DNA of 64,000 bases from Macrostomum lignano (Eukaryota): assembly GCA_002269645.1 (NCBI GenBank), contig NIVC01000891.1, forward strand, positions 1-64,000. The letters are read 5' to 3'. The position numbers were made by a program, and so were the translations under genes. How positions within the stretch are numbered: the stretch's first letter is position 1; each line of letters starts with the position of its first letter. The notes below the pieces were generated by a model, which saw only the letters and a program-made list of their open reading frames with translations, searched no databases and had not been told where the DNA came from. Shown piece by piece: positions 769-64,000 of this stretch.

Positions 769-1011
769 ATGAGCTCGGAGTCAGAGTCAGACGGCGACAC
801 CGAAGGTGCTGAGCTCTGCGGCCAGTCGGAGTCGCTGACCCGCCGTCTGCGCAACATCCTCCGCGACTACTCGGACGGCCTGGCCATCCCCAAGGAGCTC
901 ATTCAGAATGCGGACGACGCCGGCGCCACCGAGGTGACGCTGATCTACGACAGCCGGGCCAATCTGCAGTGGCGCGAGACCGTCATGGGCCGGCGGATGG
1001 CCGACTGCCAG
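769..1011 (+). CDS. SACS-like: Sacsin-like gene copy 1, exon 1 (81 codons; start of first GHKL ATPase repeat)
   Basis: CGQSESLTRRLRNILRDYSDGLAIPKELIQNADDAGATEV matches the sacsin repeat motif GQxExLTxR..ELxQNADDA. Ends CAG|GTGGGT donor, phase 0. Confidence 0.9.
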
Positions 1012-1088
1012 GTGGGTGGCGGGCGGCTCTAATTGTGTTGGCTGATGCAGGGGAGTAGCCAGCATCTTTCATTGAGGGGGTCCTTTTT

Positions 1089-1603
1089 GACTGGGCGCCA
1101 TTTTAGTTAACTGGGCGCTGTTTTATTTAACTGGGCGCCATTTTATTCGACTGAGTGCCATTTTATCTGACTGAGCGCCATTCTATTTGACTGAGCGCCG
1201 TTTTATTTGATTGAGTGGCATTTTATTTGATTGGGCGCCATTTTATTTGTCTAAGCGCCATTTTAGTTAACTGAGCGCCATTTTATTTGACTGAGTGCCA
1301 TTTTATCTGACTGAGCGCCATTTTATTTGACTGAGTGCCATTTTATCTGACTGAGCGCCATTTTATTTCACGGGGCGCCATTTTATTTCACGGGGCGCCA
1401 TTTTATTTCACGGGGCGCCCTTTTATTTGACTGAGCGCCATTTTAGTTAACTGGGCGCCGTTTTATTTGACTCAGTGCCATTTTAGTTAACTGGGCGCCG
1501 TTTTATTTGACTAAGCGCCATTTTAATCAACTGGGCGCCATTTTATTTGACTAAGCACCATTTTAATCAACTGGGCGCCGTTTTATTTGACTGAGCGCCA
1601 TTC
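1089..1603. repeat. 20-bp minisatellite (ACTGGGCGCCATTTTATTTG-like), ~25 copies, in intron 1 of copy 1
   Basis: Clear period-20 repeat. Only 1-2 units occur at the same intron position in copies 2-4. Confidence 0.95.
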
Positions 1604-1616
1604 TATGAGTATTTTA

Positions 1617-2683
1617 CAAGGACTTCCATGACGGGAAACTGTGATTCTTAGAAAAAGTTAAGCAGGCTGGTTTTCGCTGAAAATTGGCTACGGAGCTAGG
1701 ACGTTTTCACTTTCTTGATATTAAATTTGTTATCGCTTTCGATAGCAGCAGACCCAATGTTCATATTTTGATATGTTGTGCCTTTCTTATTGCTCTATTG
1801 ATATTCATAAAGCTTTTCAATCAGAAAATTAGAATTCTATGTTAATTTTTTATTCTAAGTACAATTGCGCATGTCCTGTGCCTAACAAGCATTAAAATGG
1901 CACGGCTCATTGGTTTCATGAATCTATTTTATCATTCTTAGCTGACTGTGTAGCAATATGCGTAGCAGAGAATCCAGAGATGATAAAATAGATTTAATAT
2001 CTTTAAGACCAAATATTTGAGCTGTGCCATTTATTTTTATGATTTTTAGATGCAGCAAATGTGCGTAGAATAAAAAGTTTACATGGAATTCTAATTTTCT
2101 GAAGGAAAAGCTTTACAAATATCAATAGAGCTGTAAGAAAGCACAGCATATCAAAAAATGAACACTGGGTCTGCCTGCTATCGAAAGCAATAACAATTTT
2201 TTGTGCTGAAAAAAATGACTTCCTATCTCCATAGTGTATTTTTCGGCGAAAACCAGCCTGCCTAGTAATAATAATAATAAAGCTAATAATATCTAATTAC
2301 ACCTGCCCAATTACGCCTGATGTGCAGCCGACAGACAGCTCAGCCGCAGCTATTGCGCGGCGCATCTGAAGGCTGCGTACGGCTGTTCAGTCCAAGGACT
2401 GGGGGGGGGGTCGCCACACACCCTCAATTACCCTCGCTGAGTGCTGAGCCCCAAGCCGAGAAGTCGATTTTACAGCTGGGTGAACTGAAGCAATGCAGAG
2501 TAAAATGTCCTGCTCAAGGGCACAAATTGTTCCAGTGGGATCGGGAATCGAACCCCCGACCTTCAAGTCGTGAGTCCGACGCTCTAACCACTAGGCTACA
2601 AGTACAGCCCCCTAATAGGGTGAGTAGCCTGCTTAACTTTTCTCAGAAATGTACTGCCCGTCCTTCTACTTGGGTAGTCCTTG
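1617..2683. mobile_element. Fold-back MITE (hAT-like family, same as 41078-41749) interrupted by a SINE
   Basis: Long inverted arms (GCAGGCTGGTTTTCGCTGAAAA ~1662 versus TTTTCGGCGAAAACCAGCCTGC ~2241). Ends CAAGGAC..GACGGGAAAC and CCCGTCCTTCTACTTGGGTAGTCCTTG match the TIR of the 41-kb copy. Confidence 0.75.
2262..2625 (-). mobile_element. tRNA-derived SINE with CORE-like body and (TTA)n tail
   Basis: Minus strand reads GTAGCCTAGTGG (A box)...GGTTCGATTCC (B box), then GTGCCCTTGAGCAGG...CCCAGCTGTAAAAT. (TAA)n on + at 2265-2280. Flanked by AGCCTGC at 2255-2261 and 2626-2632 (TSD). Confidence 0.8.
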
Positions 2684-61187: not shown

Positions 61188-61430
61188 ATGAGCTCGGAGT
61201 CAGAGTCAGACGGCGACACCGAAGGTGCTGAGCTCTGCGGCCAGTCGGAGTCGCTGACCCGCCGTCTGCGCAACATCCTCCGCGACTACTCGGACGGCCT
61301 GGCCATCCCCAAGGAGCTCATTCAGAATGCGGACGACGCCGGCGCCACCGAGGTGACGCTGATCTACGACAGCCGGGCCAATCTGCAGTGGCGCGAGACC
61401 GTCATGGGCCGGCGGATGGCCGGCTGCCAG
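61188..61430 (+). CDS. SACS-like: Sacsin-like copy 4, exon 1
   Basis: Near-identical to copy 1 exon 1; CAG|GTGGGT donor. Confidence 0.9.
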
Positions 61431-62344
61431 GTGGGTGTAAAGTCTGAAGATTGCGGTTTAAGCTGAGCGAGAAAATAAGTGAGGCCCAAACTGGCCAAGT
61501 TAGCGATTATATATTTGAGGTTCTAAAAGTGAACAATACGATGTACATGAATTATGCAAACCAAGATGTACATTTAAGTTAGAATATGACTCACTCACTC
61601 AGGACATCGATACCAATATTGCGAGGCAATTACAGTGGATGACGGCTCTCATTGTGTTGGTTGATGCAGGGGAGTAGCCAGCATCTTTCATTGAGGGGGT
61701 CTTATCTGACTGGGCGCCGTTTTAGTCGACAGGACAGGAAATTGCAGCGCCTTACTATATCCTTGATTAAATAGCGGGGAAAGGAATAAGGCAAAATTAG
61801 CGGTTGCTAGAAACGAAAACTCTGCGCGAACAATAATGTAGAGCGATTTATTGTTGCAAAGCATTAAAAGGTCGATGAAAATGCGACAGAAAAATCCGAG
61901 CACACAAGACAATAAAAAGCCGAGACAAGACTAGACAGCGAACGCACACCCCCAACACTCCAACCTCGCACGCACCCACCCAAGCGAAGCCACCCCGCAG
62001 TTTAAACGCTCTTCCACTAACACAGTGACTATGGGTAACATTATGAAACTTTTTATGATTTTTTCAGCAATCTATGCATAAAACAAAAAATTTTAAAAAC
62101 AATATTCTTCAACCTTCTATTATTATTTCAATAAATCCATATCATTTGACTCCTGATTCCCCAAATAACAATTCACTCGTGACTCCAAATCCGAATCACC
62201 AAATCACTTTGAACTCATATAATTCCAATATGTTTCGTTAAGTCTCAGCTCACCAATTATCGGCATGAGATGCATCTCCATTGAAAAAATTCCGACAAAG
62301 CTGACTGCTGGGTGTTCCGCCCCCTCGCCCTACCTGCCTCTCAG

Positions 62345-62575
62345 GGCCCCTGCCTCTGGGCGCACAACGACGCGCAGTTTACTGATGACGACTTCAAGAA
62401 CCTGCTGAGCCTTGGCGGCGCCACCAAGGAGGCGCAGGCGGCGAAGGTGGGCAAATTCGGCCTCGGATTCAACGCCGTCTACAACCTGACGGACGTGCCG
62501 GCCGTCCTCAGCGGCTGCCAGCTGCAGCTGCTTGACCCGCACGGCGAGAAGCGGGGCCGCGGATTCCTGGAGGAG
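62345..62575 (+). CDS. SACS-like: Sacsin-like copy 4, exon 2 (231 bp, intact)
   Basis: CTCTCAG| acceptor, GPCLWAHNDAQF..GKFGLGFN, GAG|GTGAG donor. Confidence 0.92.
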
Positions 62576-63106
62576 GTGAGAAGCTTTGGTAGGGGGTTCT
62601 GAGCGGCTCTGCCAGCGCCTTCCCAGTAGGGCACTTGAAAGGTACCAAGGTGTCCTGTTATGGCATTTTTACTTGTATTTTCATCACCAGGCCTCAGTGT
62701 CACCCCCGGCTTTTCAATGGAAGCTTTCACCCCAATGTGCTTTACTGGCTAGGATATTTGACCCTCCCAATGTGCTTCACTGGCTAGGGTATTTGACCCC
62801 CCACAATGTGCTTTGCTGGCTAGGATACTTGACCCCCAACTTGCTTCACTGGCTAGGTTATTTGACCCCCCCTGGCTACGGTATTTGACCCCCCCCCCGA
62901 AAGGAACTTCACTGGCTAGAGTATTTCCCCATGTCCTTAGTTTCACTCCAATCTTGAACCTCTACTGTCCTTCAGGGCATCCAAACCGCGGCTTAATCTT
63001 CCGACCAGTTTTCGTTGGTTGGTATACGCTCGTAGTTAATATATTAATGGTCTCCCATTGGGAAATAAATGAATGCTACATTTTCTATTGACCCTTACTT
63101 CGCCAG

Positions 63107-64000
63107 ATCTACCGCAAATACCGCAAGTGCGACACCGGCCTCAGGCTGAACTTCTCCAAGGAGGCCGGGCGCCGCATGCTGGCCAAGTATCCGCACCAGT
63201 TCGCGCCCTACACCGGCGTCATGGGCTGCGGCCCGGACCTCGGAGCCGAGCCCTACCCCGGCACGCTCATCCGACTGCCGCTGCGGACTCGGGAGCAGGC
63301 CGGCGAATCGCAGATCTGCCAGAGGGCCTACAGCGAGCAGGAGATGCGCGACCTGCTTGACAAGACGGCTCAGCAAGCCCGCCACTTGCTGCTGTTCACC
63401 CAGTCCGTGTCCAGCTTCCGGCTGCTGCATCTGCGCGATGGCTCGAACGGCTTGTTGCAGACCGACAAGCTGCTCAAAGTGAGTCGCAGCCTGATTAAGT
63501 GCATTCGGCCGTTGCCGGGCACGAGCGGCTCTGCGGATCTGCGCTCCCAGACGCGTGTACTGGCCGCCGCGGCCGAATATCTAGCGGGTGACAACGGCGG
63601 CGCTGTCGATGGAAGTTTCGCTGGGCAGCTGAAGCTGCACATCGACGTGCAGGTGAACGAGACGGAAGCGAAGCGGGTTGGCATCGACACGAACGTCGCT
63701 AGAACCGCCTCGGACAACTGGCTGCTGAGCGTAGCTCTGGGCTCGGGCGAGTCGCTGGAGATGTCGCGTCAACGCGAGGGACTCAGCCTCCCCGTCGCTA
63801 GTGTCGCCGTTCGCATGTCAGCTTGCGGCACCGCGATTGAGCCGGTGAATCGCGGCGTCGCCTTCTGCTTTCTGCCGCTGCCCATCGAGTCGCCGCTGCT
63901 GTTCCACGTAAACGCCGCTTTCGCAGTCACGTCCAGCCGACGCTACCTGGAGGAGGCCACCATGGACGAAGCCGAGGGCCGCTGGCACCCAGGTCGCTGG
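63107..64000 (+). CDS. SACS-like: Sacsin-like copy 4, exon 3 (partial, runs off the window; appears open)
   Basis: CGCCAG|ATC TAC CGC. Keeps the bases missing in copy 1 (GGC GAA TCG; GGC TCG AAC GGC). Confidence 0.9.
   Translation, partial: MYRKYRKCDTGLRLNFSKEAGRRMLAKYPHQFAPYTGVMGCGPDLGAEPYPGTLIRLPLRTREQAGESQICQRAYSEQEMRDLLDKTAQQARHLLLFTQSVSSFRLLHLRDGSNGLLQTDKLLKVSRSLIKCIRPLPGTSGSADLRSQTRVLAAAAEYLAGDNGGAVDGSFAGQLKLHIDVQVNETEAKRVGIDTNVARTASDNWLLSVALGSGESLEMSRQREGLSLPVASVAVRMSACGTAIEPVNRGVAFCFLPLPIESPLLFHVNAAFAVTSSRRYLEEATMDEAEGRWHPGRW

Follow-up and report, generated by a model that had tools for sequence, protein, structure and literature searches.

We analysed the first 64,000 nucleotides of contig NIVC01000891.1 of the flatworm Macrostomum lignano (assembly GCA_002269645.1; this whole stretch is hereafter the window), which carries a tandem array of genes related to sacsin, the product of vertebrate SACS. 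Within the window, tblastn and self-blastn reveal four sacsin-like copies, here called A to D, that are collinear, arranged head-to-tail and all encoded on the + strand, with start codons at 769 (A), 22415 (B), 44425 (C) and 61188 (D) (Table 1). An earlier model-based reading of the same letters, made without database searches (the sequence-only reading), had proposed at least four head-to-tail paralogs at this locus, and this arrangement is borne out by the alignments. That reading had also assigned both GHKL ATPase repeats and, at the C-terminus, a HEPN domain to every copy, which is correct for A and B, whereas copy C has no complete ATPase domain and the window ends before any HEPN of copy D comes into view.

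The genes are built of three exons joined by canonical GT-AG introns, the same splice pattern as that of the annotated M. lignano protein P0004. The two longest + strand open reading frames (ORFs), 4609-12981 and 30080-38755, each encode a Pfam Sacsin domain plus a HEPN domain at the C-terminus, while short upstream pieces supply the segments MSSESESDGD...ELIQNADDAGA and ...GKFGLGFNAVY, that is, the first half of the sacsin ATPase. Because the large ORF opens in the middle of the SACS domain (profile positions 156-238) and GT-AG sites join the upstream pieces to it, we regard these pieces as exons rather than relics. Copy B is intact, with a spliced coding sequence of 9,219 nt that encodes 3,072 amino acids (aa) followed by a stop codon; an exact protein look-up of its ORF returned no record because the real product is spliced. 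The first ~455 codons of copy D are visible and open throughout (the tblastn match begins at 63176), with no HEPN in view. Since the ~9-kb ORFs are interrupted by assembly indels, the public M. lignano gene models for the sacsin-like family are only fragmentary, at 490-1,762 aa.

Domain architecture of the encoded proteins

Each full copy encodes two sacsin repeat regions (SRRs), both opening with a GHKL ATPase, followed by a Gly-rich linker and the HEPN domain. The Pfam SACS domain PF25794 is matched with E-values of 3e-72 to 5e-89 (244 and 299 bits, the cutoff being 32.8), and a second copy of it lies at the N-terminus, split over the exons. In a self-comparison, SRR1 (residues ~18-574) and SRR2 (~1063-1610) share 28% identity (E 2e-37), and SRR2 aligns with the solved human sacsin ATPase 5v44 (E 6e-39). 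The Bergerat-fold motifs read ELIQNADDAGA, HND and GKFGLGFN in SRR1, and ELVQNADDAGA, VND and GQYGIGFN in SRR2, such that both modules carry the ATP-binding motifs (the ExxxNAxD N-box, ND and GxGFN). The ATPase and HEPN motif residues are identical across A, B and the copies X and Y, the paralogous pair on a second array described below. Pfam detected no domain besides SACS and HEPN in the protein: DnaJ produced no match at E<=1, whether within the last 571 aa or elsewhere, and neither a ubiquitin-like domain (UBL) nor a third SRR was found by Pfam and self-comparison, the first ATPase beginning 17 residues after the protein start. A homology search with the C-terminal 690 aa returned no matches, candidates having probably been swamped by poly-Gly and poly-Ala words. 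Overall, we consider the anatomy of these genes secure. The Gly-rich linker (GGC repeats at ~38,270-38,330 and ~49,105) varies between copies through in-frame indels of 3-24 bp.

The HEPN domain matches PF05168 at 27.1 and 25.2 bits (cutoff 22). Single-sequence AlphaFold2 (AF2) modeling of this domain reached a predicted local distance difference test (pLDDT) score of only 66, and we used instead an alignment-based AF2 model, with a pLDDT of 92.7 and a predicted template modeling score (pTM) of 0.87. The best Foldseek match of this model is the HEPN of human sacsin, 3o10, with a template modeling (TM) score of 0.70-0.73, and the other top matches are 1ufb, 1wol, 4nqf and 1o3u; the prokaryotic HEPNs TT1696, ST0689 and TM0613 rank next after human sacsin. 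A single-sequence search of solved structures missed 3o10, whereas a 24-sequence profile found it at E 4e-14 and matched 1ufb at E 8e-35. An exhaustive HMMER search of 1.84 billion representatives yielded only 40 relatives at E<=1e-3, comprising paralogues from M. lignano, proteins of gastropods and prokaryotic HEPN proteins of ~130 aa.

In the 24-sequence HEPN-T alignment, which includes 23 of these relatives, the seven invariant columns are D21, Q46, E49, K50, K53, H67 and R101-Y102-P103, and all of these are present in the flatworm protein; the segments AAEKAMK, RPAERSH and RYP occur in A, B, C, X and Y. On the same profile, E, K and H are no longer present in human sacsin, and because the flatworm HEPN retains them, we argue that they are probably in use. 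With prokaryotic HEPN-T proteins (PF05168: TT1696, TM0613, ST0689, AF0298), the flatworm domain shares 27-35% identity and every family-invariant residue, among them the RYP arginine and the His in the insert between helices 2 and 3. Whereas these HEPN-T proteins and AbiV measure ~130 aa and either stand alone or serve as toxins with a nucleotidyltransferase as partner, the flatworm HEPN terminates a 3,000-aa ATPase protein.

Copy states and evolution of the array

Compared with B, copy A contains three frame-breaking deletions, of 2, 1 and 1 bp (Table 1), whereas every other exon-3 indel between A and B is a multiple of three. All three deletion sites are filled at the same locus on NIVC01001999.1, another contig of assembly GCA_002269645.1. 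Positions 1-8471 of the window represent the same locus as the end of that contig (148506-156981; 99.65% identity), and over these 8.4 kb the two versions differ by one substitution and 26 indels of 1-2 bp, mostly beside short homopolymers; the NIVC01001999.1 version, in turn, has frameshifts of its own where the window reads open. This pattern of differences is long-read assembly noise, and the copy A frameshifts are most likely assembly errors. Given the absence of the deletions at the same locus, the indel-noise pattern and the lowest lineage-specific pN/pS (proportions of nonsynonymous to synonymous changes, see below), copy A is very probably intact, and frameshift-based pseudogene calls in the M. 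lignano genome are unreliable.

Copy C, in contrast, is a true pseudogene. A deletion of ~11 kb fuses intron 1 to the middle of exon 3 (codon ~1340), the tblastn match starts only around residue 1,225-1,323 and passes through three frame changes, and two stop codons have arisen by substitution (CAG>TAG at 45062-45064 and TGG>TAG at 45806-45808). Further lesions consist of an inserted T at 46350, a 5-bp tandem duplication (TTACA) at 48218, another inserted T at 49506, and a 13-bp deletion at 49592, through which the reading frame has lost its normal end. Copy C retains only exon 1 and the C-terminal half of the gene, and it is dead. Thus, of the three states that the sequence-only reading had distinguished, intact and deleted describe B and C well, whereas "frameshifted" very probably does not apply to A, whose deletions are absent on NIVC01001999.1.

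A second array, containing X and Y, resides on NIVC01000566.1 (296828-345935) and shows 94-97% identity to the window, with which it is collinear from position 2 to ~42,447; this array may represent either a homeologue that arose in the recent genome duplication or a divergent haplotype. Its first copy is intact (3,068 aa), and there is no long interspersed nuclear element (LINE) between its copies. The proteins P0004 and P0122 map to NIVC01000566.1 and P0123 maps to the end of NIVC01001999.1, the nearest named proteins being M. lignano "Sacsin/Nov domain-containing" models. At least two further M. lignano sacsin-like subfamilies exist, with 33-35% aa identity. The one on NIVC01003517.1 (L005:10001-18946) is intronless, with an intact 2,982-aa ORF located head-to-tail behind another copy, and its HEPN yields a stronger match (E 1e-15) with the same conserved residues. 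In the paralogue on NIVC01001174.1 (L004:9920-18880; 33% aa identity), the ORF is split in two, Gln stands in place of the HEPN His and RYP has disappeared, and this HEPN is predicted to be a natural, catalytically dead variant in the same genome. BOX15_Mlig015937 represents an additional group of HEPN-bearing M. lignano genes.

The presence of a ~95% identical locus on another contig, together with the many 1-2 bp indel errors in both the window and NIVC01001999.1 versions, might suggest that the copies are assembly artefacts, either allelic haplotypes, a possibility that the sequence-only reading had itself raised against its proposal, or collapsed or expanded repeats set in tandem. However, the copies within the window differ from one another by 5-9% in substitutions as well as in promoter class, intron content, the LINE insertion and the 11-kb deletion, whereas the two versions of the same locus, in the window and on NIVC01001999.1, are separated by a single substitution in 8.4 kb. 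Moreover, the same tandem order recurs as X-Y on NIVC01000566.1, and the same A locus on NIVC01001999.1. The substitution and structural differences led us to reject a haplotype artefact for the within-window copies, and artefactual tandem assembly in general is hardly credible.

Pairwise Nei-Gojobori ratios of nonsynonymous to synonymous substitution rates (dN/dS) among A, B, C, D, X and Y range from 0.29 to 0.44; along the gene, they amount to 0.11-0.12 in the SRR2 ATPase windows and to 0.5-0.9 elsewhere. The overall range is too high for a tightly constrained housekeeping gene. The A lineage is the most constrained, with the lowest lineage-specific pN/pS (0.25-0.30), whereas B carries the most private nonsynonymous changes (pN/pS 0.66-0.78). 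That the intact copy B shows the highest private pN/pS, that C is dead, and that the ORF of the NIVC01001174.1 paralogue is split and its HEPN retains neither the His nor RYP would all be compatible with a decaying or non-functional cluster of duplicates in which the copy states reflect relaxed constraint only. Such decay appears quite improbable to us, considering that A, B and X have kept open ORFs of 8.4-9.2 kb in spite of a nucleotide divergence of 5-9%, that all other exon-3 indels are multiples of three, and that dN/dS falls to ~0.11 in the ATPase windows and to 0.25-0.30 in the A lineage. Purifying selection keeps at least two copies, B and, almost certainly, A.

Divergence along exon 3 is far from uniform. 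Synonymous divergence varies ten-fold (0.02 to 0.22), differences counted in 300-nt segments show strong over-dispersion (p<1e-20, with a variance/mean of 5.7-8.3), and the closest pair alternates between A-X, X-Y and A-B. This mosaic reflects gene conversion among the tandem and homeologous copies and accounts for the patchy divergence that had been noticed from the letters alone. The array is lineage-specific and evolves via unit duplication, gene conversion, transposon insertion and occasional gene death (copy C), and the combination of tandem paralogues, a pseudogene and several divergent subfamilies is a birth-and-death pattern.

Relation to Tiamat TmtA and possible function

In a PADLOC scan, the only match was to TmtA, the protein of the Tiamat anti-phage system (models PDLC03964-03972), at E 1e-68 via SRR2 (ORF 30080-38752, aa 881-1306), covering profile positions 11-346 of 1370. 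The NIVC01003517.1 paralogue matches TmtA at E 4e-107 over positions 9-716 of 1370, essentially the whole SRR. Bird, sea-urchin, octocoral and fungal SACS proteins match TmtA as well, as do cyanobacterial proteins annotated as "sacsin N-terminal ATP-binding-like" (E 7e-216), which show 33% identity to SRR2. Because vertebrate, fungal and other SACS proteins match too, the homology to TmtA is a property of the whole sacsin superfamily and not of this locus. No full-length match that included the C-terminal part of TmtA was found; the homologous module does not make the protein a member of Tiamat. In a preprint, Tiamat is placed with the single-gene systems that have a PD-(D/E)XK nuclease, and our literature search found no paper linking Tiamat and sacsin. 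The likeness is that both TmtA and the flatworm protein combine a homologous ATPase module with a C-terminal nuclease-type domain in a single polypeptide; the differences are that TmtA, according to the preprint, uses a PD-(D/E)XK nuclease where the flatworm protein has HEPN, that the C-terminal part of the profile is unmatched, and that the ATPase module is duplicated in the flatworm protein.

With vertebrate sacsin, the protein of ARSACS (autosomal recessive spastic ataxia, Charlevoix-Saguenay type), the flatworm proteins share SRRs that carry a GHKL ATPase resembling Hsp90, a HEPN at the C-terminus with the same fold, and a gene structure with one giant terminal exon and a first ATPase split over small 5' exons. 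However, they contain two SRRs instead of three and lack UBL, XPCB and DnaJ, for a length of 3,072 aa compared with 4,579 aa in human sacsin; their HEPN keeps the E, K and H residues that the human protein has replaced, and their genes are multicopy and tandem whereas the vertebrate gene is single-copy. Expanded families of SACS-domain proteins are also found in oyster, mussel, lumpfish and salmonids, and a protein of the gastropod Batillaria (P0133) has the same SACS and HEPN composition; the tandem layout, gene conversion and HEPN residue status described here for the flatworm family are not reported for these in the papers that we consulted. The oyster sacsin-like family has been listed among antiviral effectors responsive to poly(I:C) and ostreid herpesvirus 1 (OsHV-1) (PMC7064767), and a lumpfish sacs-like gene is induced by poly(I:C) (PMC11357929).

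Taking these comparisons together, we tentatively propose that the M. lignano genes encode defence effectors of the ATPase-RNase type that respond to stress or infection, a proposal that, in our assessment, falls only a little short of being probable. It draws on the HEPN-T residues retained where human sacsin lost them, the absence of DnaJ, the existence of subfamilies with turnover, the "ATPase + nuclease" parallel with TmtA, and the published induction of sacsin-like genes in oysters and fish. Under this proposal, the two ATPase modules would function as a sensor or switch driven by ATP and would bind a client, which might be a misfolded or foreign protein or a nucleic acid. The C-terminal HEPN would dimerise in the manner of prokaryotic HEPN toxins and of its counterpart in human sacsin, and dimerisation could juxtapose the His of RPAERSH and the Arg of RYP to form a metal-independent RNase site. 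Activation would then result in RNA cleavage and curb translation in the affected cell, by the same "ATPase + nuclease" principle that Tiamat TmtA and similar bacterial defence proteins realise in a single chain.

The principal alternative is that these are ordinary proteostasis genes, that is, Hsp90-like co-chaperones in which HEPN serves only as a dimerisation or nucleotide-binding module, with the array being a neutral by-product of a duplication-prone, repeat-rich genome. The homology of the SRR to human sacsin 5v44 and the proximity of the HEPN fold to 3o10 speak for this alternative, purifying selection operates throughout, the duplication of the whole array elsewhere at ~95% identity fits bulk genome duplication, and the similarity to TmtA fits either role. 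On the other hand, without DnaJ, UBL and a third SRR, the Hsp70-recruiting part of such a co-chaperone is missing, the HEPN retains residues lost in human sacsin, and a dN/dS of ~0.3-0.45, divergent subfamilies and copy turnover are unusual for a core chaperone. We regard a purely proteostatic function as possible, albeit doubtful, and an infection- or stress-responsive effector role seems somewhat more likely than a purely constitutive co-chaperone role.

Several observations weigh against the defence proposal. The canonical Rx4-6H motif of HEPN domains is incomplete in every copy, in which the Arg (RYP) is present but no His occurs within the next 4-6 residues (RYPRDGAT). The same canonical His is absent from AF0298-like HEPN members, and the elements of an alternative site, namely, the conserved His in the helix 2-3 insert, the basic motif residue and Ex3K in helix 2, are all present. 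This alternative-His variant of the active site has been described for AF0298/AbiV-type HEPNs (PMC3710099), and for AbiV, RNase activity has been proven and relies on an R...H pair within the corresponding insert. RNase activity of the flatworm HEPN is therefore a prediction that hinges on the alternative His.

The selection data point in the same unfavorable direction. No 100-codon window has a dN/dS above 1, the highest value being 0.87, on few changes, and the strong positive-selection signature expected of an arms-race gene is lacking; the sequence-only reading had named a dN/dS well below 1 throughout as evidence against itself, and the overall range is 0.29-0.44. Two patches in B, with nonsynonymous to synonymous ratios of 11:1 and 11:2, were considered as candidates for positive selection and rejected as too small for significance. 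Because the M. lignano genome is highly duplicated, copy number alone is weak evidence of adaptive expansion. The homology to TmtA, being shared with vertebrate sacsin, does not separate an immune paralogue from a chaperone, and the defence role of the M. lignano genes is predicted from sequence.

The promoters likewise provide little comfort. The sequence-only reading had noted shared kappaB motifs and motifs resembling the gamma-activated site (GAS) in what it took for an inducible family. A GAS-like site TTCNNNGAA, of the pattern TTCC(A/N)(G/A)GAA, does occur ~205 bp upstream of the ATG in all four promoters, but they share it through common ancestry, and the window as a whole shows no enrichment of the motif (33 sites, with 25.9 +/- 5.3 expected). 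The kappaB half of the claim fails: the consensus GGGRNWYYCC is found three times in the window, against 6.9 expected, and in none of the promoters, which contain only the kappaB half-site-like GARTTTCC. In the planarian Schmidtea, no clear NF-kappaB homologue has been identified (PMC13563047), which weakens a vertebrate-style reading of these motifs. The inference of an innate sensor-effector family thus retains the conserved HEPN-T residues, the expanded family with turnover and the TmtA homology on its side, with the dN/dS below 1 and the absence of kappaB sites counting against it.

Nor is the immune idea for sacsin-like proteins new: earlier work had already proposed that sacsin HEPNs may be active RNases and that sacsin-like expansions play a part in host-pathogen interactions, along with the observation that some animal sacsins keep the HEPN motif whereas human sacsin does not (Anantharaman et al. 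2013, PMC3710099). We found no paper linking Macrostomum and sacsin, and what is new here is the description of the flatworm array, the corrected copy states, the contrast drawn with human sacsin residue by residue, and the homology between sacsin and Tiamat made explicit. A broader scenario, which we consider unlikely as it stands, would have the SRR as the eukaryotic counterpart of Tiamat TmtA, with short sacsins that combine two SRRs and a catalytically competent HEPN (in M. lignano and molluscs) working as immune effectors that unite ATPase and RNase in a single chain and that were taken over from prokaryotic defence by inheritance or co-option, and vertebrate SACS being a derived form, its HEPN inactivated, that was repurposed for proteostasis. 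Should this be true, sacsin/Tiamat would join the immune modules shared by bacteria and animals, and it could inform why the loss of human SACS is pathogenic. The role of the sacsin HEPN has been a question since 2013, and, provided that this HEPN is an active RNase under the control of the ATPase modules, this locus, in which ancestral-looking active-site residues are still present, offers a test of it in an animal amenable to transgenesis and RNAi.

Other features of the window

The coordinates of the genes and other elements are collected in Table 1. The promoters form two classes, A/D/X and B/C/Y. In the B- and C-type promoters (22205-22240 and 44216-44250), the AATTTCCAAGA element is tandemly duplicated (GAGTTTCCAAGAGAATTTCCAAGAAATTTC), whereas the A and D types have it singly. 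Upstream of both the window array and that on NIVC01000566.1 lie a TPD52 gene and a gene encoding a 517-aa protein, and an Rfam search detected no RNA families in the window.

Table 1. Sacsin-like copies, promoter sites, mobile elements and repeats in the window
Feature	Position	Strand	Remarks
GAS-like palindrome TTCCAGGAA, promoter of A	563-571	.	
Equivalent GAS-like sites TTCCAAGAA	22227-22235 (B), 44238-44246 (C), 60992-61000 (D)	.	
Copy A exon 1	769-1011	+	ATG and N-box of the first GHKL ATPase (ELIQNADDAGA); GT donor after CAG at 1011; peptide and splice mapping
Copy A exon 2	3527-3755	+	ND and GKFGLGFN boxes of ATPase 1; 2-bp deletion at 3542
Copy A giant exon 3	4239-12981	+	1-bp deletions at 4439 and 4576; ORF open over 4609-12981 (2,790 codons)
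Copy A exon 3 domains	~6955-7662; ~12604-12954	+	SRR2 ATPase; HEPN
Copy B exon 1	22415-22657	+	
Copy B exon 2	29248-29478	+	AG acceptor, GT donor
Copy B giant exon 3, intact	30011-38755	+	SRR2 ATPase ~32729-33436, Gly-rich linker, HEPN ~38366-38728
Copy C exon 1 remnant	44425-44667	+	
Copy C truncated exon 3 (pseudogene)	44881-49640	+	
Copy D exon 1	61188-61430	+	
Copy D exon 2, in frame	62345-62575	+	
Copy D exon 3, first 298 codons, open	63107-64000	+	Remainder cut off by the window end
LINE between A and B	18693-22084	+	Intact endonuclease and reverse transcriptase ORF, 18846-21962, 1,038 codons; Pfam
Reverse-transcriptase fragment, intron 1 of B	26454-27296	-	
SAP-domain ORF, intron 1 of B	28457-28939	-	160 aa, E 1e-11
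Long terminal repeat (LTR) retrotransposon fragments between C and D	52500-54500		RNase H and integrase, 53505-54500 (+); integrase fragment, 52500-53414 (-)
Satellite (AAGGAAT)x153, intron 1 of B	23418-24485		
Satellite (AG)x551 between C and D	56509-57606		
20-, 46- and 18-bp minisatellites	1086-1606, 2666-3256, 16756-17298		

The LINE between A and B is absent from the paralogous array, collinearity with NIVC01000566.1 providing its limits; the insertion looks recent, and the element is possibly active. The SAP-domain ORF, which lies near the reverse-transcriptase fragment, may belong to a retroelement or form a small gene of its own. Owing to the satellite arrays, the length of intron 1 ranges from ~0.9 kb in D to 6.6 kb in B.

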